In this document: positions 613 through 34,415 of the stretch, piece by piece
Numbering within the stretch: the stretch's first letter is position 1
Layout: every line of letters begins with the position of its first letter
From: Dicyema japonicum
Lineage: Eukaryota; Animalia; Dicyemida
DNA: 36,005 nt
Reading direction: 5' to 3'
Assembly: GCA_011109175.1 (NCBI GenBank)
Contig: RDEW01000107.1
Location: 1-36,005 of the forward strand
Made by a program: the position numbers and the translations under genes
The notes under the pieces: generated by a model
Seen by the model: the letters and a program-made list of their open reading frames with translations, nothing else
Database searches by the model: none
Told to the model about the DNA's origin: nothing

Positions 613-980
613 NNNNNNNNNNNNNNNNNNNNNNNNNNNNNNNNNNNNNNNNNNNNNNNNNNNNNNNNNNNNNNNNNNNNNNNNNNNNNNNNNNNNNNNN
701 NNNNNNNNNNNNNNNNNNNNNNNNNNNNNNNNNNNNNNNNNNNNNNNNNNNNNNNNNNNNNNNNNNNNNNNNNNNNNNNNNNNNNNNNNNNNNNNNNNNN
801 NNNNNNNNNNNNNNNNNNNNNNNNNNNNNNNNNNNNNNNNNNNNNNNNNNNNNNNNNNNNNNNNNNNNNNNNNNNNNNNNNNNNNNNNNNNNNNNNNNNN
901 NNNNNNNNNNNNNNNNNNNNNNNNNNNNNNNNNNNNNNNNNNNNNNNNNNNNNNNNNNNNNNNNNNNNNNNNNNNNNNNA

Positions 981-4034: not shown

Positions 4035-4798
4035 NNNNNNNNNNNNNNNNNNNNNNNNNNNNNNNNNNNNNNNNNNNNNNNNNNNNNNNNNNNNNNNNNN
4101 NNNNNNNNNNNNNNNNNNNNNNNNNNNNNNNNNNNNNNNNNNNNNNNNNNNNNNNNNNNNNNNNNNNNNNNNNNNNNNNNNNNNNNNNNNNNNNNNNNNN
4201 NNNNNNNNNNNNNNNNNNNNNNNNNNNNNNNNNNNNNNNNNNNNNNNNNNNNNNNNNNNNNNNNNNNNNNNNNNNNNNNNNNNNNNNNNNNNNNNNNNNN
4301 NNNNNNNNNNNNNNNNNNNNNNNNNNNNNNNNNNNNNNNNNNNNNNNNNNNNNNNNNNNNNNNNNNNNNNNNNNNNNNNNNNNNNNNNNNNNNNNNNNNN
4401 NNNNNNNNNNNNNNNNNNNNNNNNNNNNNNNNTTACTTCTATATCAGTACTTGAGACATCAGTATTCATACAACACTCTTATTTTATTTAAATTTAATAA
4501 ATTTAATAATAAACTATTTTTGTATTTACAAAAACTAAAACAAAAATAGAGTTAGGGGGCCGTATCCCTGGCTATTTATCTCCGAACTGGAGGTAAGAAG
4601 AGATAATTATTATATAAATTATTGACTGTATAAATGATAGCATGCGAGTAGAACATAGATAAGTCACACTAGAAGGCTCACGGGAAGCTGAAATCGATAT
4701 TGAAAATGCCGACGGAAGGCATGTGATTTGAAGATGCTGCCTGCTCGAGGGTTAGAAAGACGGAATTGTTATCAGCATGGACGGTCGAAACTATTTCA

Positions 4799-6374: not shown

Positions 6375-6602
6375 GGAATAACATGGGCCCAGCGTCGAAG
6401 GCCGTGAACTTTTTACTGGGGTTCCTCTCCAACTAATCAGTCTCATAAACATATCACAGCCTCGATCGTTATCCTCTTATCCACAGCCTTTTTTGCTGCG
6501 TAAATCTTGTCCGAAGAGTAAACTTTATAATATTTAGCGCAAAACGGTAATCAAAGCCGCCAAATTTTCTTAATAAAAGTGTTAATCATAAATCGTTCGC
6601 AA

Positions 6603-9293
6603 ATGTTACTGCTTAAATGGGCGTTTTTAATAATTTTTTATGCAATTAATTACAGGAGCTTTTCTGGTCATCTTATTAGTCTTCGGTATACGAAAAAACA
6701 TCTCAAGGGAATCAGTAAAGACGAGGAACCACAAAATCCCAAATTTAGAAAATCTATCGTGATTATTATCGATGGACTCAGATTTGATTCAGTTTTGGCC
6801 AACAGCACCAGAAATGCGACATACCTCAATCGACTAACGAACCTATACAAAGTTCAATTAAATGAGCCCCAGAATACACGTGTTTATTCATTCAGCGGTA
6901 GATTTCCTGCCATGACCAGTAATCGGTTACGTTCAATTTTCAAAGGAATTTGGCATGGATTTGGAGATTTTGGATATATCCAAGATAACCTATTTAATCA
7001 GTTCCGATTAAATGGCAAGAAATTGGCCTTCGTTGGTGGAGTATCGTGTCCTAATATATTCGGACGTCCCTTTGAAGTAAATATTAGCATATATGACAAC
7101 GATCTCGACGATATCTTCAGAATTGATGATCTCATTAATGAGAGCTTTATTGAATTTATAAAGCACAACACTTCTGACGTTTATGTAGCTCATTTTCTTG
7201 GAATGGATCACCTATACCACCTATTGGGTCTCAACCATCCAGAAATTCAACACCGTCTTGAGTTTTATGATCGTTTTATCGGGTAAGGGTCATTTTAACT
7301 AGTTCAGAAAATTATTGCCTTTAATTGACGAAGAAACCGTATTGTTCGTTCTAGGGGACCACGGATCTGTTCCAAATGGGTCTCACGGAGATAACCTCGA
7401 GGAGGAGGACAGTGCCCTGTTTATATATAGTAAAAAACAGCTATCACCCACTCCATTGAACATTGTGATCTTTGATTTATTAATCTAGAACGAAATTCAG
7501 CGAATTGAACAAGATCAATTCGCTCCCACCATGGCTATGTTAATGGGAGTAAACATTCCCTTCCAGAACATGGGGACCTTTATTAAGGATATCGATTATG
7601 GCGGCATCTCGGTATTCATTATTTTAACAAATTTAGGAGTTCAACTTGAGTAGAATAAATAGTAAGCAAATTATCAAGTTCTACAAATCGTTAAATCTAA
7701 TTTCGTCCCCATTTGAAAAAAATAAAATTATGAAGGACATCAAAGAGGCTGAATTCAAGACTGCCATTGGAGATTTCGATGATGCGACTGAAATATATTT
7801 ACGAATAATGAAACGAATAAAGGATCTGCTTTACACTAAGTGGAGCCTATGTGATGGTTCAGAACTACCATATCACGTGGTTTTTACGTTCTACGTTAAT
7901 TTGGGAATTTTAATTCTGTATATCAACAAGATCCCTCCAATATTGATGAGTTTGTTGGTTGGAACATTTGGAGTTGCTCAATTTTTCTTTCCCCTCATTC
8001 CATTCCTCATTTCTTTCTGCTTAACGGCAGTATTCGTCGCTATTACACTTTACAGGAAACTGAGTCCCATCACGATTGGGTCACTTTTGGGAATATTCTA
8101 TGCACTGTTCATTTATGTCTATTTATATCGGATGGAAATTAACAATTTTAGCTCAATGTGGCTGGTCCTTACCTCATTCGCTTTGGTTTTGGTTTGCAAT
8201 GTAAGGCCTCGCCTTAAAAATGAATGGATTATCTCCGGTTTGTCAGGCACGTTGATCCTCTTCCTTATAATCTGCTCGAGTTTATTCCGATATTGTGAAA
8301 AATGGCCGTGCTCTGGTAATCTGTACTCGACTGAAGTATCTACTCTATCTTCAGGCCAACTCATTTCCGTCTACATATTGGTCTTCATAATACTGATTGG
8401 GGGACAATATTCCATCATAAAATTCGAAATATTGCCTGCGGTAAAATTTTTTGCCTCAGTCGCCTTAATCTTCATGATTTTGTTTGATTTTCACTATTTG
8501 AGATATTTCGACGATTACATACAAATCAGTTTCTTCCGACAACGTTACTTGTCATTTTTGTTTTACTTTTCGCTAATTATGGCATCAATAACCGTCCCAC
8601 TTAGTGCCATATATTCATTGGTTATGAAGAAACCGATCAAATTGATGAAATATTACAACTCATTTGCTGTTATTGCCACTCTCTTGTGCATTTTTGTCAA
8701 CAATATACTTATCAATTACCATTTTGTGCTTTATTTCCTAATCATATTCGTTTACATCAATTTTATTAGGAAATTTGCAGTAAAAAACAAAAATATTGAG
8801 TTGTTGAACTTTCATAACACGTTCTTTGATGTTAGTTTTTGGTTTTTCCTGACTCTATCGTTTTTCTACGCGACTGGACATGACCACTCATTTACCACCA
8901 TTCATTGGAGTGCCTCGGCATTTCTTTTAAGAGGAGATTACTATAAAATCATAGGTTTGATGTTTATCTAATCAAGTCTTTTTGAACTTCATCGAATTGT
9001 CCACTTTTGTCATTCTGGGGTCTCTATTTTTGCCTTACACGGTTAATCACGAGTCCTCGTACAAACTTCAAGAGTATTTCAAATTGACCTGTCTTCATTT
9101 CATCCTCTCTAACATATTAGTTTTAATTATAGTGAAGCTTTTAGATTGGATCATCGATATTGCAGTTTGTAAAGTACAAATGCGATTCTGCTAACAACCC
9201 CAGACTGCATTTTGCCTTTTACAACGACGAAACATACTATATGATTTCGAACAGAATGTCCCTGTTTTGTGTTGGATTAGTTTCGCTTATTAA
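6603..9293 (+). CDS. PIGO: GPI ethanolamine-phosphate transferase 3 (PIGO/GPI13-like), ~854 aa, 6 exons
   Basis: Exons 6603-7282, 7308-7464, 7489-7611, 7637-8954, 8977-9173, 9204-9293 (2565 nt, in frame); introns of 25, 24, 25, 22 and 30 nt. Alkaline-phosphatase-superfamily motifs IIIDGLRFD, FPAMTSNRL, HFLGMDHLYHLLGLNHPE, VLGDHGSVPNGSHG, EQDQFAPTMAMLMGVNIPFQNMG. Multi-TM C-terminus with FYATGHDHSFTTIHW. HPE and TGH..F..IHW favour PIGO over PIGG. The last intron and exon are less certain. Confidence 0.9.
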
Positions 9294-29181: not shown

Positions 29182-29577
29182 ATGCTGCCTTGGTAGGCAT
29201 TATTCATGGTGAGTTAATTATAGTTGATTTAACCGAAGAACATTGTAAAAGAAGGTTTCAATCTCTTCGTAGTCAAATAAAACGCATTCAATGAAAGTCA
29301 CTCTTATTTAAATAGTCATGTTAATGGCATCCGAACAAGAACAAAGATATTTGTAATGATGAATTTAATAATATAATGTATTATGCAACATTAGGACATC
29401 TTCGCGAAAATAATAAAAAATATAAGAGTGCTGACCCACAGACATTTTTGCCAGAAAATTTCATTTGTTAGAAAAGCACTGACAATACTTTCCGAAAGCC
29501 AGAATAATGCTACAGCTAATAGATTAGAACTGTACTTGACTTGTGTGAAGAGCATGTCGTCTAATCGTGAGAATTAG
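29182..29577 (+). pseudogene. Small secreted Cys-patterned protein family, pseudogene copy
   Basis: Starts ATG CTG CCT (MLP, as in the 31467 copy) with an early stop. Intron remnant 29209-29238, then DICNDEFNNIMYYATLGHLRE...LYLTCVKSMSSNREN* across several frameshifts. Confidence 0.85.
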
Positions 29578-30377
29578 TTAGCTAATGGATAATTTTACTT
29601 CCTCAGTTAAAATCGTTATCAATAAATTTTCTATTCATTAAATATAGGATTAAAATAATTAGTGCCATTAGGAACAAATCAGGCTAGAGCAGGTCAAAGG
29701 AAATAATCATCCCTTGGACATCGTTTGCTACGTCTAATTGTCTTCGATCTGATTTGTTCCTAATTCTTTTGTTCTAACAAGTAAAACAAGCCAAATAAAG
29801 TATCTTGTACAATTTACTAAACTGATCCGTGATAGTTAAATTAATCCAAATGATCATTACATCAGGTATAATTTAGATTATAAACTTTTTTGTTCTTTAT
29901 TAAGTTTTCTTTGTTGTTTTGTATTGTCGTGAAGTACTAATATTGCATAAAATAACTTTATCATTTAGGATAGTGACTTCCAGTTCTATTCGTTAAGTCA
30001 ACAATATTATTTACTTTTAGATTTCTTTTTGTGTTCAATATGCTCGAGTCAGAAAGTATTCTTTTCTGTTTATCGAGTTTTATGAATTATTATGGTTTTC
30101 GGAAACTCTAAAAAATAACATTTTTAGGATTTTATAATTCTTGATATTTCATAATCTGATATCACAATCATCATATATACAGTAAGATAGCTACTAGTTC
30201 TCTTTCCTTTTTTTACTGTAGTGGTATGTTCATATGATCCACATGTTCATGTGTGTCCAGTTCAAAGGTGGCTCGAAAAAGGGTCATTTATCTCCTACTG
30301 AGGTATCACGCAGTCATTACTATTCTGGTTCTAATTGTTGAATGTTCCGCACATTTATGATGATTTGGTATTACGAT

Positions 30378-30560
30378 TGACGCTGTCATCAATAAATGCT
30401 TCACTGCAGAACCAGATCTTTCAAGTAAGACTGACACTCAGGAAAAAAAAAAAAAAAGTTAAAGGACATTACTTGGTTCTCTTCCCTTAATACGGTTCGT
30501 TACTCTAACAAAGTGTGTCCTGTTTATGCAGAACTATAAATAACAAGATTTCGCGAAAAG
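30378..30560 (+). mobile_element. SINE copy, core and tail (5'-truncated)
   Basis: gacgctgtcatcaataaatgcttcactgcagaac...A-run...aaagtgtgtcctgtttatgcagaactataaa...cgcgaaaagg aligns with 19950-20145. Confidence 0.7.
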
Positions 30561-31134
30561 GTTGTTAATATTAATTTTTATTATATCGATAAAAATATAT
30601 TTGAGTCGATTTTAGCTTAATTTAACATTTCTAAACTCAAAGTGAATTAATGACATGAATGTTACGATGGTGACTTATCCATATTCTCTATTGCAATAAA
30701 TGTATGGGTTAGCTTCTTGATGAATAAAGCGCCTTTTCTTCTTCGTAACGTGAACTTGGACGAGGTAAAGTACTCAAAAACATCGGAAACCAGAGGTTCT
30801 AAACGAAGCACTGTCTTATGCTCGTAATATCTGAATTAAATCCCGTAAGCCAAAAAATTAAAAATCTTCCAAGAACTGTCATAATCGTGAATGGTAGCTA
30901 AAATTTTCAACTCACGTTTATTCTGTAGACATAGTCCTTCTCTCAGTGGAATAGAAATTCGAAATTTCTTTGCTTTAAAAAATACTTGAAAGTTGAATAT
31001 ATCTCTAGCAAGCAACCTTCTCGGAGGCGTGCAAAGAGCTGTCATTAGCTTCTACACGTAAACGAAACAGGAATTAAAATTTATTTAACTCAACAATAAT
31101 TATTGAATAATCACATTAGCAAGATGTTCCAATG

Positions 31135-31240
31135 TTATAAATGATATAGTTCCAGGTTCGAATTTTGCTGATGTACATTCCAAAAAAAGGTTTCTCGCAT
31201 CTGCGATGCTTATGGTTTGACGGGTGATTTCTTGAAAGAT
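31135..31240 (+). mobile_element. SINE 5' fragment (B-box and start of core)
   Basis: caggttcgaattttgctgatgtacatt...gcatctgcgatgc..atggtttgacgggtga aligns with 19878-19955. Confidence 0.55.
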
Positions 31241-31435
31241 AGGGTCAAAAATATCTCAATACCCGATAGTTAAAAGGTTTTAATGGAAATTGGGGATTAC
31301 CACATATTGGAGTCTTAGTTTAAGCAACTTGATGGGTGATACTAATCATGTTATCGACATCAGGTAAGATATATTCTCAGCTGTATGTCGTGTGAGAGCA
31401 AAATAAATTTATAAATATGCATTCACATCTTATTT

Positions 31436-31445
31436 TATATAAAAG
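31436..31445 (+). promoter_or_regulatory. TATA-like element upstream of the secreted-protein gene (conserved in the paralog at 33897-33906)
   Basis: tataaaagaac...acgttagc.aa.taATG is shared by both intact paralogs, with the TATA core about 30 nt before the ATG. Confidence 0.5.
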
Positions 31446-31466
31446 AACATTTACGTTAGCCAAGTA

Positions 31467-31908
31467 ATGCTACCTTTTATGATAAGATTGATTTCTTTAC
31501 TAATACAGAAAAGACTTCTGGACCCAGCTCAAATATTACCAAGTAATTAAATTATAGGTAATTTTAATAGTTCAACAATGTGAAAGAAGGGCTATTTTTA
31601 TTCTGGTGCAATTTTACAAATGGATACTAAGTCACTCTCAATTAAAAAATCACATTAATGGTATTCGAAATGAAAACAGGGATATTTGTAATGAAGAATA
31701 TAATAATATAATGTATTATGCAACATTAGGGCATCTTCGCGAACTTAATGAAGAATTTAGAAGGGATAACCCAAAGACTTATTGCCAGAAAATTCCTTAT
31801 ATTCTTGAAGCACTGTCAATATTTTCAGATAACCAGAATGCGACAAATAATGGATTTGGACTTTACTTGGCGTGTGTGGAAAGTACATCGTCTAATGTTG
31901 AGAATTAG
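31467..31908 (+). CDS. Small putatively secreted helical protein, 4 Cys (137 aa, 2 exons)
   Basis: Exons 31467-31542 and 31571-31908, intron 28 nt (GT-AG, phase 1): MLPFMIRLISLLIQKRLLDPAQILPIQQCERRAIFILVQFYKW...DICNEEYNNIMYYATLGHLRE...TYCQKIPY...LYLACVESTSSNVEN*. The N-terminal hydrophobic stretch is weaker than in the paralog. Confidence 0.8.
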
Positions 31909-32399
31909 TTAACTAGTTGATAATTTTACTTTCTCGGTTAAAACGTTATCAATAAATTTTCTATATTCATTAAAATATCAGGATTATAATATTTAGAAGG
32001 TATAAGCAACAAATCAGGCTACAGCTGCCGAACGGAAGATCGTTATAAAAAATTAAAATAATTCCAATGACCAAGGGTAACCAAACTAACTAACTCATTG
32101 ATCCTGATTTGTTCCAACGTTCCAGAAGTTGTCTCCAGGAAACAGATTGTCCCGGGGAAGAATAGTTGGATCCTCTTGATGCCGGACAGGCATTATGCAT
32201 CTCCTCAGTAAAGTGATCCATTGATGCCATCGACTCCATGAATTTTTTTGGGATTCCATGAATTTTTTCTTGTTTTTCTGCACCTCTCCTTGGCAAATCA
32301 TATCATAGCGTTTACTGCACTGAACAGAGACTTAATCGCTAGTAATGTGTCAGATCTAATTAAAATAAGATTTCCTAAGAAAAATCTGTTGATGCAATC

Positions 32400-32496
32400 A
32401 ACAAAGTCGTCTTTGAGTCTCTTGTACATATTAGTCTATTGGGAGTTCCCTTTTAACAATTTCTTAAGGGAAATGTCGTCAGTCGGTTAGCAAACT
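32400..32496. repeat. Short dispersed repeat (paralog ~15045-15140)
   Basis: tcgtc.ttgagt.tcttgtac.tattagt...ttaacaattt.ctaag.gaaatgtcgtcagtc..ttagcaaact occurs at both loci. Confidence 0.7.
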
Positions 32497-33149
32497 CTTC
32501 AGCTTTATCATGCGGACTGAATGCCGAATTTTTAGCATTTTGCTGATTTCATTTATTTGGCTCCGAATTTTTTTTAATTTTATTGCCCAAGGATCAATGT
32601 GTTAAAAGAGAAAAAATGTTCTGCTGACTAAGTGATCTCAAATCATTAAGAGATCGCAGATTTGAATGCATAGCTAATCTATTTGCAGGGGGAACATGCT
32701 AGAATTATCAACTGCGTTTACTGTCCTCCCTTATCAACAACGATTAATTGGTGAGAAGATTATTTCAGTACGTCTACTTTAAGTAATTAAGTTATGTGCG
32801 AAAATAATAATATGAACGGTAGGGTTTGTCAACAGACTTCTACACAGACAGCCTCACAAGAAATCAACAAACTCATGGTTATATTTGAAACTCATGGTTA
32901 AGTCTCAAATACTTTAGTTCGGTCTTTGTAACCTCGAATAAGATTTTCGATAGTTCCACCAACCTTGCAAATTTTTCCTTCCACCACAGAAAAATGGTAC
33001 ACGAAAATTTACCTCGTAAGCTTGCTTCAGAGCAAATTGCAAGTTTTCTCAGATTTTTTGAAAATTAACTGTCACCTTTTTGGTTCGTACCGTTTTTCTT
33101 AACCGTTGAACATTCAAGGAAATATTGGGAAGTAGATGATATTAAAAAT

Positions 33150-33590
33150 GGTATCCTACTCGATTTTAACTTTCTAACTCATAACAGAGCGTTTGTAGCT
33201 TTTTTCTTTCGTATTTCGGAATGATTCATGAAAATACCTCCCTGGTCAATTGAGAGGGCAAGGTATTTCAAAGCCTTCTTCTGAGATATGTTTTGTAACG
33301 TGTTCTTTATTTAATTAGCCTCCTGCTTCCATTTATCCTCACCACATTACGCTTCTCATCTGCGACTAAAAGAAAGTTTTCATTACACAAATCTTCGATC
33401 AGTTCCATGTATTTCTTAAACCGTTGGGTTTAAAGAGACATGATAAGTTATGACATCATCAGCGTACATCAAGATTTCTGTACGTGGGTTTTCTTGGGAA
33501 GGCAATTTATTTTTCAGTTTTCTTGGAAGGCATTACAATGTTAATAAAAGTGGACTGAGAACTGAATCCTATCGACACCTCTGTTCAGTC
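33150..33590 (-). mobile_element. LINE RT relic
   Basis: Minus strand R*DSVLSPLL (QG.VLSPLLF) and EILMYADDV (33452-33478). Confidence 0.65.
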
Positions 33591-33927
33591 AAATTTCACG
33601 AGAATCATATTTTAAAAATTAAAAATTGAATTATTATCCTTATTTTTGACTACATGGCGCCATGTGTGCTATATAGCTAGTTTGTCATAATATTTTCCTT
33701 CCTTTCGATGGCGTCTTTGGAATCACTTTACTGAGGAGACGCTTAGATTTTCATTAATGGGATTATTGGTTTTAGAATCAGGATTGATAATTATATCAAT
33801 GTTCTCGATTATATATCAGATAAAATATATTTTCTAGGCTGTTTGATGTATGAAGGCAAAATATTTTTTTAATTTTGCAATGGCACTGGCGCGTTAAATA
33901 TAAAAGAACACATACGTTAGCAAAATA

Positions 33928-34415
33928 ATGTTAACTTTACTGATGACATTGGTTTCTTTAGTAATTAACAGCGTACCAATAAATTCAACTCAAAGATTAC
34001 AAGGTAATTTAATTATAGTTGGATTTTACTAGATCAACAATGTGAAAGAAAGGCTATTAGGCTTGCAGTGCGAATTGACGAATGTAGGGGATTGATCTTG
34101 GAATTAAAATCCAGCGTTGATGCTATCCGAAATGAGAACGAAGATAATTGTAACGAAGAATATAATAATTTAATGTATTATTGCACATTAGGGTATCTTC
34201 GGGAACATTATGAACATTTAAGAAGGGATAACCCAACGACTTATTGTGGGCAAATTCCCTATCTAAAGATAGCACTGTTAATGATTTACGATAACGTGAA
34301 AGCCACAAATACAAGATTAAGAGAGTACACTACATGTGTAAATAGTAGCACACGTAAAAATATGAATAGTACATTGGAGACTCGATTTAATTTATTAAAA
34401 GTTTCCTATTCATAA
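33928..34415 (+). CDS. Small secreted helical protein, 6 Cys (152 aa, 2 exons)
   Basis: Exons 33928-34003 and 34033-34415, intron 29 nt (GT-AG, phase 1, same position as in the paralog): signal-like MLTLLMTLVSLVINS-VP, then ...DQQCERKAIRLAVRIDECRG...DNCNEEYNNLMYYCTLG...TYCGQIPY...EYTTCVNSS...VSYS*. Confidence 0.85.

Follow-up and report, generated by a model that had tools for sequence, protein, structure and literature searches.

Small, secreted, lineage-specific protein families with quick turnover are known in many parasites. Dicyema japonicum is a parasite of the octopus kidney, and dicyemids are animals of about 30 cells that switch between asexual and sexual reproduction in a density-dependent manner. 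We know of no molecules that have been assigned to the dealings of dicyemids with their cephalopod hosts or to this reproductive switch, and text searches of the literature found no paper on secreted proteins of dicyemids. Here we describe a family of compact genes from D. japonicum and compare it with the protein systems that it resembles most.

Conotoxins are encoded by venom-peptide gene superfamilies, and their mature peptides are knotted and 10–40 residues long. Superfamilies of this type grow through gene duplication and combine a conserved signal, conserved untranslated regions and a fixed cysteine framework with a diverged mature part, as does the D. japonicum family. In contrast to the short knotted peptides, the family codes for a predicted helical bundle of about 110 residues with two presumed disulfides; moreover, it has no sequence similarity to conotoxins, and statistics did not show an excess of amino-acid change in it. 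To our knowledge, dicyemids have no venom apparatus. Schistosome micro-exon genes likewise are parasite-restricted orphans with no homologs outside their lineage, with signal peptides (putative in our family), tandem arrays and fast divergence. They are built of many tiny symmetric exons, whereas our family has two ordinary exons and one micro-intron, and no sequence relation between the two was detected.

With saposin-like proteins, the family members would share small size, helical structure, stabilisation by disulfides and a place in the secretory pathway. However, the fixed saposin pattern comprises six cysteines, and saposins form four to five short helices, as opposed to the four cysteines and three long helices of our family; no saposin was among the listed Foldseek or VIA-align matches. 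The trypanosome haptoglobin-haemoglobin receptor, ISG65 and helical outer-surface proteins of Borrelia share the general fold class with the family, but these weak structural matches (Z 6–7, Foldseek E >1) lie within the tool's stated noise for helical bundles, and the proteins differ from the family in size and are not similar to it in sequence. Judged from the predicted model, the resemblance is hence one of fold class only. Finally, Euplotes pheromones are secreted, polymorphic, disulfide-stapled three-helix bundles, as predicted for our family. These cell-cell signals typically have about 40 residues with six cysteines, their organism is unrelated to dicyemids, and we know of no sequence relation between them and the family; they may illustrate a possible signalling role by analogy, and no more.

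Three copies in the window

The window, i.e., the whole stretch of DNA that was analysed, comprises 36,005 nucleotides of contig RDEW01000107.1. Its plus strand carries three direct repeats with spacings of 2335 and 2462 nt (Table 1). The original prediction for this DNA had placed three same-strand paralogs about 2.3–2.5 kb apart and had called two of them intact genes of 137 and 152 amino acids with a phase-1 micro-intron. Both statements hold, and both intact copies gave stop-free two-exon models. Exon-2 matches inside the genome reached E = 1e-25 to 1e-65, chance similarity is therefore excluded. LINE-like fragments are also present in the window.

Table 1. Coordinates of predicted gene features of the three copies in the window.
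Feature	Position	Strand	Remarks
Copy 1, pseudogene remnant	29206..29626	+	from alignment with the intact C35 counterpart and with C80
Copy 1, intron remnant	29209-29238	+	same alignment to the C35 counterpart and C80
Copy 1, exon-2 remnant	29239-29577	+	same alignment to the C35 counterpart and C80
Copy 1, 3'UTR, AATAAA	29621-29626	+	
Copy 2, proximal promoter block	31397..31466	+	conserved across distant paralogs
Copy 2, exon 1 (76 nt), with the start codon and coding for a signal-like hydrophobic peptide	31467..31542	+	
Copy 2, intron (28 nt), GT..AG, phase 1	31543..31570	+	position and phase recur in 9/9 modelled paralogs
Copy 2, exon 2 including TAG stop, four-Cys helical domain	31571..31908	+	coding part 31571-31905
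Copy 2, 3'UTR block, terminal AATAAA at 31951-31956	31909..31956	+	conserved across paralogs
Copy 3, TATA-like element (TATAAAAG at 33899) and short leader	33899..33927	+	
Copy 3, exon 1 (76 nt)	33928..34003	+	
Copy 3, intron (29 nt), GT..AG, phase 1	34004..34032	+	
Copy 3, exon 2 including TAA stop	34033..34415	+	coding part 34033-34412

Copy 1 is a dead gene. It lacks exon 1 and promoter, and no homology to its intact counterpart is seen before 29206. The remnant contains three frame-shifting indels and one 3-nt insertion, changes frame three times and reads through frames 2, 0, 2, 0. The earlier assignment as a frameshifted pseudogene was thus correct, but the ATG at 29182 that had been included with it is unrelated sequence outside the gene.

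Copy 2 has the full set of gene signals and a weakened signal core. Its promoter block contains ATTCACAT at 31421 and TATAAAAG at 31438-31445, 29 nt ahead of the ATG. Retention of the intron leads to in-frame stops, and the spliced model has 137 codons and no internal stop, with cysteines at precursor residues 29, 65, 97 and 127 and a glycosylation sequon at residue 115. The hydrophobic core is broken by an arginine at residue 7.

Copy 3 has a good signal, i.e., 13 uncharged hydrophobic residues at the N-terminus without interruption, and an aberrant 3' end. Upstream of the TATA-like element, a ATGCACAT-like block is found in degenerate form. The spliced model of 152 codons contains the four framework cysteines and two extra ones at precursor residues 43 and 76. 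From about 34348 the tail diverges from its relatives; the usual family stop is lost and about 15 codons are added. We found neither AATAAA nor ATTAAA within 200 nt downstream of this copy.

A family of compact genes in the genome

With a family-profile search of the D. japonicum assembly, we found about 30 loci in tandem clusters, of which roughly one third are open. Copies lie on at least 14 scaffolds. Most loci are broken, in differing manners, by stops, frameshifts or truncations. The predicted plan of exon 1 (64–91 nt), a single phase-1 intron (26–30 nt) and exon 2 (roughly 330 nt, range about 300–380 nt) is common to nine paralogs with protein identity down to about 30%, and intron retention produces in-frame stops in seven of these nine modelled paralogs. 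With two exons and a single intron the genes are not of the micro-exon type. Introns below 30 nt are the norm in the published D. japonicum genome. Introns of about 28 nt hide first exons from ORF-based annotation, and the family is a clean example.

In the conserved core promoter, a TATA-like box is located about 29 nt before the ATG, and a short conserved 3'UTR ends with AATAAA in most members. Only the 60–70 nt preceding the ATG and about 55 nt following the stop can be aligned, farther flanks cannot (identity 0.57 versus 0.24). Both blocks are less diverged than exon 2. The promoter motif occurred 13 times in the genome, compared with no occurrence of a reversed control; at 12 of the 13 sites a family member or remnant follows closely downstream, and the remaining one (C2:1061561) is a stranded promoter without a gene. 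This genome scan, in which co-regulated non-family genes were sought, thus returned nothing but members, remnants and the one stranded promoter, and the motif is family-specific. The about 30 clustered loci, their varied breakage and the stranded promoter support the birth-and-death evolution that had been proposed from the window. The family would have expanded by tandem duplication and lost copies by frameshift, nonsense mutation and deletion.

The D. japonicum genome consists of 49% repeats, and this, together with the spread over scaffolds and the LINE-like fragments in the window, might suggest a mobile element or satellite repeat, with the reading frame as passenger or accident. However, Pfam detected a transposon domain in none of the members, an RNA family search of the repeat unit gave no match, and the only find in the search for terminal inverted repeats around the unit was a 16-nt AT-rich match. 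Moreover, copies form local tandem arrays rather than dispersed insertions, and distant copies align only over the gene, promoter, intron and poly(A) signal included, and not over the flanks. From the missing transposon domain, the lack of meaningful inverted repeats and the unalignable flanks of distant copies, we rejected a transposon origin and regard the repeat explanation as a whole as extremely improbable.

We searched for relatives with a profile of 13 family sequences against 1.84 billion protein representatives and found none. A word-based protein search returned no relative either, Pfam gave no match to single exons or to all 13 aligned members, PDB sequences gave none with single-sequence and profile queries, and the best score in the ESM Atlas (0.81) was at chance level. 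These blank searches strengthen the earlier claim of a lineage-specific family. Protein collections contained no family member, but they were equally blank for a neighbouring 441-amino-acid frame used as control and are hence uninformative on expression. Such families as a phenomenon are ordinary; this one is without detectable relatives elsewhere. Taken from sequence comparison, the compact units are likely to be real protein-coding genes of a family that is confined, as far as seen, to D. japonicum.

Predicted protein, evolutionary rate and possible role

The alignment of 13 members (A1) is almost gap-free, and internal gaps comprise only whole codons. Core motifs CNEEYNN, YCxQIPY and CVxS are conserved, and the N-terminal third is diverged without gaps, both as described in the original prediction. 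The cysteine pattern given there was incomplete, since a further conserved cysteine directly follows the intron (CER/CKR), which results in a four-cysteine framework. Cys2, Cys3 and two further columns are invariant in all 13 members, whereas Cys4 is found in 12 and Cys1 in 11 of them. The copy-3 subfamily usually has two additional cysteines, one of which copy D has lost. Two cysteine-rich families were tried and discarded: saposin-like proteins (SapB; six cysteines versus four framework cysteines, no SapB match in the 13 members at E up to 1) and PBP_GOBP odorant/pheromone-binding proteins (no Pfam match, only four cysteines versus a six-cysteine pattern). This agrees with the earlier reading of the spacing as neither saposin nor odorant-binding protein.

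AlphaFold2, run on A1, i.e., on 13 paralogs, gave a model with pLDDT 91.9 and pTM 0.79 and helices at 2–35, 40–65 and 70–110. The mature part of about 110 residues is hence predicted with high confidence to be an antiparallel three-helix bundle. Cys1 opens helix 1, Cys2 sits in the loop between helices 1 and 2, and Cys3 and Cys4 belong to helix 3, the former at its start and the latter close to its end. Two disulfides (Cys1-Cys3 and Cys2-Cys4), paired by topology and not by coordinates, would clamp both ends of the bundle. Hydrophobic columns in helix 1 mostly follow a 3–4 spacing, as in helical bundles; in a permutation test of helical periodicity in hydropathy and conservation, results were mostly non-significant and only helix 3 conservation reached p = 0.008. 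Foldseek found nothing below E = 1 in the PDB. The best score in an exhaustive VIA-align comparison was Z 9.3 (PorM), followed by generic bundles, all within the tool's stated noise for helical proteins. The combination of AlphaFold and Foldseek suggested at the outset thus yielded a confident three-helix bundle and no specific structural match. Compared with cytokines, which have four helices in an up-up-down-down arrangement, the model has three long, kinked, antiparallel ones. No cytokine chain was among the listed Foldseek or VIA-align matches; the only cytokine-related entry listed was a designed Alphabody co-crystallised with interleukin-23 (5mj4_C), and its Z of 6.7 is in the helical-bundle noise range.

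Secretory precursors have an N-terminal hydrophobic core of about 7–15 residues followed by a polar region, and this arrangement is present in the family, interrupted in copy 2 by Arg7. In the nine modelled paralogs, an uncharged run of 9–15 residues begins at residues 1–4, and their best 11-residue windows, with a mean Kyte-Doolittle hydropathy of 2.0–3.0, start at residues 2–4 and are followed by polar residues. The hydrophobic stretch itself (10–13 residues) is too short to span a membrane. Further hydrophobic segments were not found in family members, and a C-terminal KDEL-type or hydrophobic tail is absent from all members examined. We read the exon 1 product as a putative cleavable signal peptide with a short polar linker. 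Secretion is plausible, given the hydrophobic N-terminus, the presumably paired cysteines and the absence of a retention or anchor signal. Alternatively, the genes could encode a real, non-secreted protein with the hydrophobic N-terminus as a membrane tether or as part of an intracellular helical protein: a positively charged n-region is missing, copy 2 carries Arg7 within the hydrophobic stretch, and generic helical bundles are frequent inside cells too. The short run cannot provide a membrane span, though, and it starts at the same residues as signal peptides do; four cysteines placed in pairs at the bundle ends would be expected chiefly in an oxidising compartment, and neither another hydrophobic segment nor a retention motif was found. 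We hence consider a non-secreted protein improbable.

Divergence is greater in the mature coding part than in promoter, signal codons or 3'UTR. Maximum likelihood omega was 0.65 over all columns, 0.99 in helix 1 and 0.52 in the rest (residues 37–104). These values support the rapid evolution that had been proposed. In the dN/dS comparison across paralogs, pairwise Nei-Gojobori omega ranged from 0.6 to 1.6 with no value clearly above 1 given the counts, and in no pair was dN significantly higher than dS; an excess above 1 was thus not significant. Both ends of the bundle would stay conserved, and helix surfaces, above all those of helix 1, would change at an about neutral rate.

An omega near 1 together with many broken copies would also fit a family in decay. 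The genes may then be relics, once functional and now free of selection, with open copies open only through youth. Stops, frameshifts or truncations in most of the about 30 loci point in this direction, as do omega of 0.65 overall and of about 1 in helix 1, and both open copies in the window are blemished, copy 2 by the arginine in the signal core and copy 3 by the altered 3' end. Nevertheless, open members that have diverged to 30–35% identity differ only by whole-codon gaps and retain four cysteines, the CNEEYNN and YCxQIP motifs, intron phase, promoter and poly(A) block. A frame of 111 codons at about 31% G+C would be open by chance in about 1 of 10,000 cases (estimate from base composition), and omega of 0.52 at residues 37–104 is below neutrality. 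Decay of the whole family is therefore unlikely in our view, although a shade less so than a non-secreted product.

Because the bundle ends are conserved and the helix surfaces, helix 1 above all, change at a near-neutral rate, we favour the reading that these genes encode a binding protein that acts outside the cell and would meet a changing partner through its variable helix faces. Given life on octopus renal epithelium, a host-facing role is a tentative first guess; signalling between parasites or some other extracellular role has a similar likelihood. One may go further and picture secreted, disulfide-clamped three-helix ligands found only in dicyemids, with variable faces and haplotype-specific working sets that reflect an ongoing molecular dialogue, a scenario that we put forward as rather doubtful. 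If it were true, the dialogue could be with octopus renal epithelium, with attachment or immune or transport modulation as the outcome, or with other parasites, e.g., as the density signal by which nematogens become sexual rhombogens. As an orphan, apparently exported and fast-changing family that has a promoter motif of its own and a fold predicted with confidence, these genes offer concrete candidates for in-situ, proteomic and binding work.

A sequon is located at one alignment column in 7 of the 13 members and is replaced by lysine in the copy-3 clade; chance sequons are frequent in a protein so rich in Asn.

Gene copies in the window and their common architecture

On the + strand, the stretch from 29.2 to 34.4 kb contains three related units whose starts are 2335 and 2462 nt apart (copies 1, 2 and 3, i.e., types A, B and C). 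Copy 2 comprises 137 codons with no internal stops, and copy 3 has an open frame of 152 codons. Both introns are in phase 1 and precede the first conserved cysteine by two to three codons. When we re-read both copies, the protein lengths, intron sizes, intron phase and motifs given in the original prediction were all correct; its cysteine pattern is corrected by a fourth conserved cysteine directly after the intron. Two additional cysteines are usual in copy 3 and its subfamily, where copy D is without one of them.

Coordinates of gene features in the window
Feature	Position	Strand	Remarks
Copy 2 promoter block	31421–31466	+	
Copy 2 exon 1	31467–31542	+	76 nt
Copy 2 intron	31543–31570	+	28 nt, GT..AG, phase 1
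Copy 2 exon 2	31571–31905	+	followed by TAG
Copy 3 promoter block	33899–33927	+	
Copy 3 exon 1	33928–34003	+	
Copy 3 intron	34004–34032	+	29 nt, phase 1
Copy 3 exon 2	34033–34412	+	followed by TAA

Copy 1 had been described as a frameshifted pseudogene, in a cluster given as beginning at 29182. It is indeed frameshifted, as its exon-2 remnant carries three indels that shift the frame, plus an insertion of 3 nt (reading order frames 2, 0, 2, 0), but that start has to be given up. Copy 1 is homologous to its intact counterpart elsewhere in the assembly only from 29206 onward, a few bases ahead of the intron remnant. It has no exon 1 and no promoter, and the ATG at 29182 is part of unrelated sequence. 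Copy 3 becomes sharply unlike its relatives from about 34348, directly past the last cysteine. Here the usual stop of the family is missing and the frame stays open for about 15 more codons, in sequence that is 3'UTR in the other copies, with no AATAAA or ATTAAA within 200 nt downstream.

All nine paralogs that we modelled follow one plan, down to about 30% protein identity. A first exon of 64–91 nt encoding M-[LF]-x-L-[LF]-I-[ST]-... is followed by a phase-1 intron of 26–30 nt and by an exon beginning near C-E-R. Intron retention leads to in-frame stops in seven of the nine. Two loci, copy A on scaffold C35 (L004) and the copy on scaffold C348 (L007), have a micro-intron of 30 or 27 nt that contains no in-frame stop, and retention would therefore only add 9–10 residues rather than truncate the protein. 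The protein alignment of 13 family members (A1) is almost free of gaps, and internal gaps are whole codons only. Four columns are invariant, Cys2 and Cys3 among them; Cys4 occurs in 12 and Cys1 in 11 of the 13 sequences.

Conservation extends beyond the coding sequence. About 60–70 nt upstream of the ATG are conserved even among the most distant members, with an element of the ATGCACAT type and, 27–30 nt before the ATG, a TATA-like box (TATAAAAG/TTTAAAAG); the position of this box would imply a 5' leader no more than a few nucleotides long. The ATGCACAT element itself contains an upstream ATG, and this argues for a transcription start downstream of it. Past the stop, about 55 nt are conserved, with AATAAA at their end in most members. 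The flanks 70–270 nt further out cannot be aligned (identity 0.57 in the blocks versus 0.24 in the flanks). Genome-wide, the promoter motif was found at 13 sites, compared with none for a reversed control, and 12 of these sites are directly upstream of a family member or remnant. The thirteenth is a stranded promoter without a gene, C2:1061561. In this locus (L044, C2:1061401–1062400) the motif stands at position 161 as ATGCACAT..ATATAAAAGA, and unrelated sequence comes after it, as if a solo promoter had remained once the gene body was lost.

We also considered a mobile-element origin and rejected it: neither a transposon domain nor a terminal repeat was associated with the gene unit, and no RNA family matched it.

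The family across the assembly

The published D. japonicum assembly comprises 67.5 Mb in 377 scaffolds, with a mean intron length of 38 bp, 49% repeats and 1.24% heterozygosity (PMC6736024). In the 67,542,437 bases and 377 pieces that we searched, exon 2 of copy 2 matched 31 places, and the 13-sequence profile A1 yielded 37 matches at about 30 loci. Tandem clusters are located on C35 (1.183–1.208 Mb, plus 1.258 Mb), C2 (1.048–1.062 Mb), C1, C374, C80 and C10, and single copies on C348, C13, C112, C359, C356, C246, C334 and C268. Complete two-exon models were obtained for nine members; the C35 twin of copy 2 is a tenth, and the C13 copy is apparently complete, too. The other loci are damaged by premature stops, frameshifts or missing halves, and further damage includes a nonsense codon in place of Cys1, an exon 1 frameshift and a heavily degraded copy on C334. 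This varied damage, together with the stranded promoter, is the pattern of birth-and-death. The original prediction had proposed such turnover from the three window copies, and it is borne out by about 30 loci, tandem clusters and varied damage outside the roughly ten members that are intact. The main rival explanation sees the whole family as a decaying relic, and the conservation shared by open copies that are very distant from one another makes it less likely.

The window lies on C10, a 78.6-kb scaffold, the first 34.3 kb of which (window 1–34350) are collinear with C35:1,161–1,193 kb on a 1.4-Mb scaffold at 94–98% identity. The same array is present in inverted orientation on C80, a 26-kb scaffold (1–26204). 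Most simply, the three versions are probably uncollapsed haplotypes, because the sequenced sample was pooled and heterozygous and a haplotype-merging step was used (PMC6736024); a recent segmental duplication is a possible alternative. Copy counts for anything in the window are therefore inflated by this redundancy. The working gene set differs among the three versions. Type A is dead on C10, open on C35 and has a stop six codons early on C80; type B is open on C10 and C35 and damaged on C80; type C is open on C10, broken on C35 and not present on C80.

Predicted protein, rate of change and putative role

The exon-1 peptides contain an uncharged hydrophobic run of 9–15 residues, starting from residue 1–4 and followed by a polar stretch, with a mean 11-mer hydropathy of 2.0–3.0. 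As judged from its length, this run would match a signal-peptide core and be too short for a membrane span. In copy 2, as in its twin on C35, the hydrophobic core is split by an Arg at residue 7. A C-terminal retention motif or hydrophobic tail was found in no member.

AlphaFold2 modelling on A1 gave a confident prediction (mean pLDDT 91.9, pTM 0.79) of three long antiparallel helices, 2–35, 40–65 (kink at 51–52) and 70–110 (kink at 87). Of the four cysteines, the first lies where helix 1 starts, the second in the loop between helices 1 and 2, the third where helix 3 starts, and the fourth close to the end of that helix. From this topology, rather than from coordinates, we infer that Cys1 would lie beside Cys3 and Cys2 beside Cys4, i.e., two clamps, one per bundle end. 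Hydrophobic columns in helix 1 (7, 10, 14, 17, 21, 24, 28 and 31) are spaced by 3–4, as in a bundle core; columns 8, 12 and 20 are strays. Most of the formal periodicity tests did not reach significance. Of the 13 members, 7 share a glycosylation sequon at one column of the alignment, across the deepest split, but we give it little weight because sequons are frequent by chance in an Asn-rich protein.

The rapid evolution originally proposed is seen in a maximum likelihood omega (codon model, family tree) of 0.65 over all columns; helix 1 (residues 1–36) has 0.99 and the remaining columns 0.52. Pairwise Nei–Gojobori dN/dS ranged from 0.6 to 1.6, and no pair stood convincingly above 1 when the counts are considered. 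Mismatch rates pooled over every pair of the nine modelled paralogs were 0.15 in the 3'UTR block, 0.23 in the promoter block, 0.26 in the first 14 codons and 0.26 in exon 2, the last being an underestimate because its alignment needed many gaps. Between A and Z, exon 2 outpaces its surroundings, with mismatch rates of 0.24 (0.34 in a codon-based alignment) compared with 0.12 in the promoter, 0.07 in the signal and 0.07 in the 3'UTR. The mature part thus changes fast, on average near the neutral rate, with the cysteines, the frame, the motifs at both ends and the regulatory blocks retained. These rates fit a mix of strongly constrained sites and sites that may change freely or adaptively; positive selection is not proven.

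Conserved ends, variable helix faces and working sets that differ among haplotypes or duplicates suggest a protein that binds a changing partner outside the cell. Our first guess, albeit a tentative one, is that it faces the host at the octopus renal epithelium; signalling between parasites or some other extracellular role seems similarly likely. Nothing supports the label "toxin".

Searches for relatives and neighbouring sequence

Pfam gave no match with single exons or with all 13 members. PDB sequences (single sequence and profile) and a word-based search of 5.8 billion clusters gave none either, and a profile search of 1.84 billion representatives returned zero matches at E up to 0.001. 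The best ESM Atlas score, 0.81, was at chance level. Foldseek with the model found nothing below E = 1. An exhaustive structure search reached a top Z of 9.3, followed by designed three-helix bundles and a spectrin repeat, and at Z 6–7 by various helical surface proteins, parasite or bacterial. These are generic helical bundles, inside the range in which the tool is uninformative for such folds. The results support the lineage-specific orphan family that had been suspected, and we consider it likely to be a real, quick-turnover family of putative exported, disulfide-stabilised, predicted three-helix proteins.

A control query with a neighbouring 441-residue frame from the same window was likewise blank; the collections thus cover the proteins of D. 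japonicum itself poorly, and relatives could well exist in other dicyemids. This multi-hydrophobic frame, which had no match in the word-based protein search, is one of two long open frames on the + strand at window 6579–8971. The other, of 235 aa, resembles the Pfam family type I phosphodiesterase/nucleotide pyrophosphatase only weakly, below threshold (E 0.0025). Three N runs (window 613–979, 2520–2683 and 4035–4432), either assembly gaps or masked stretches, sit in a region with LINE-like reading-frame fragments on both strands at about 2.5–4.0 kb.
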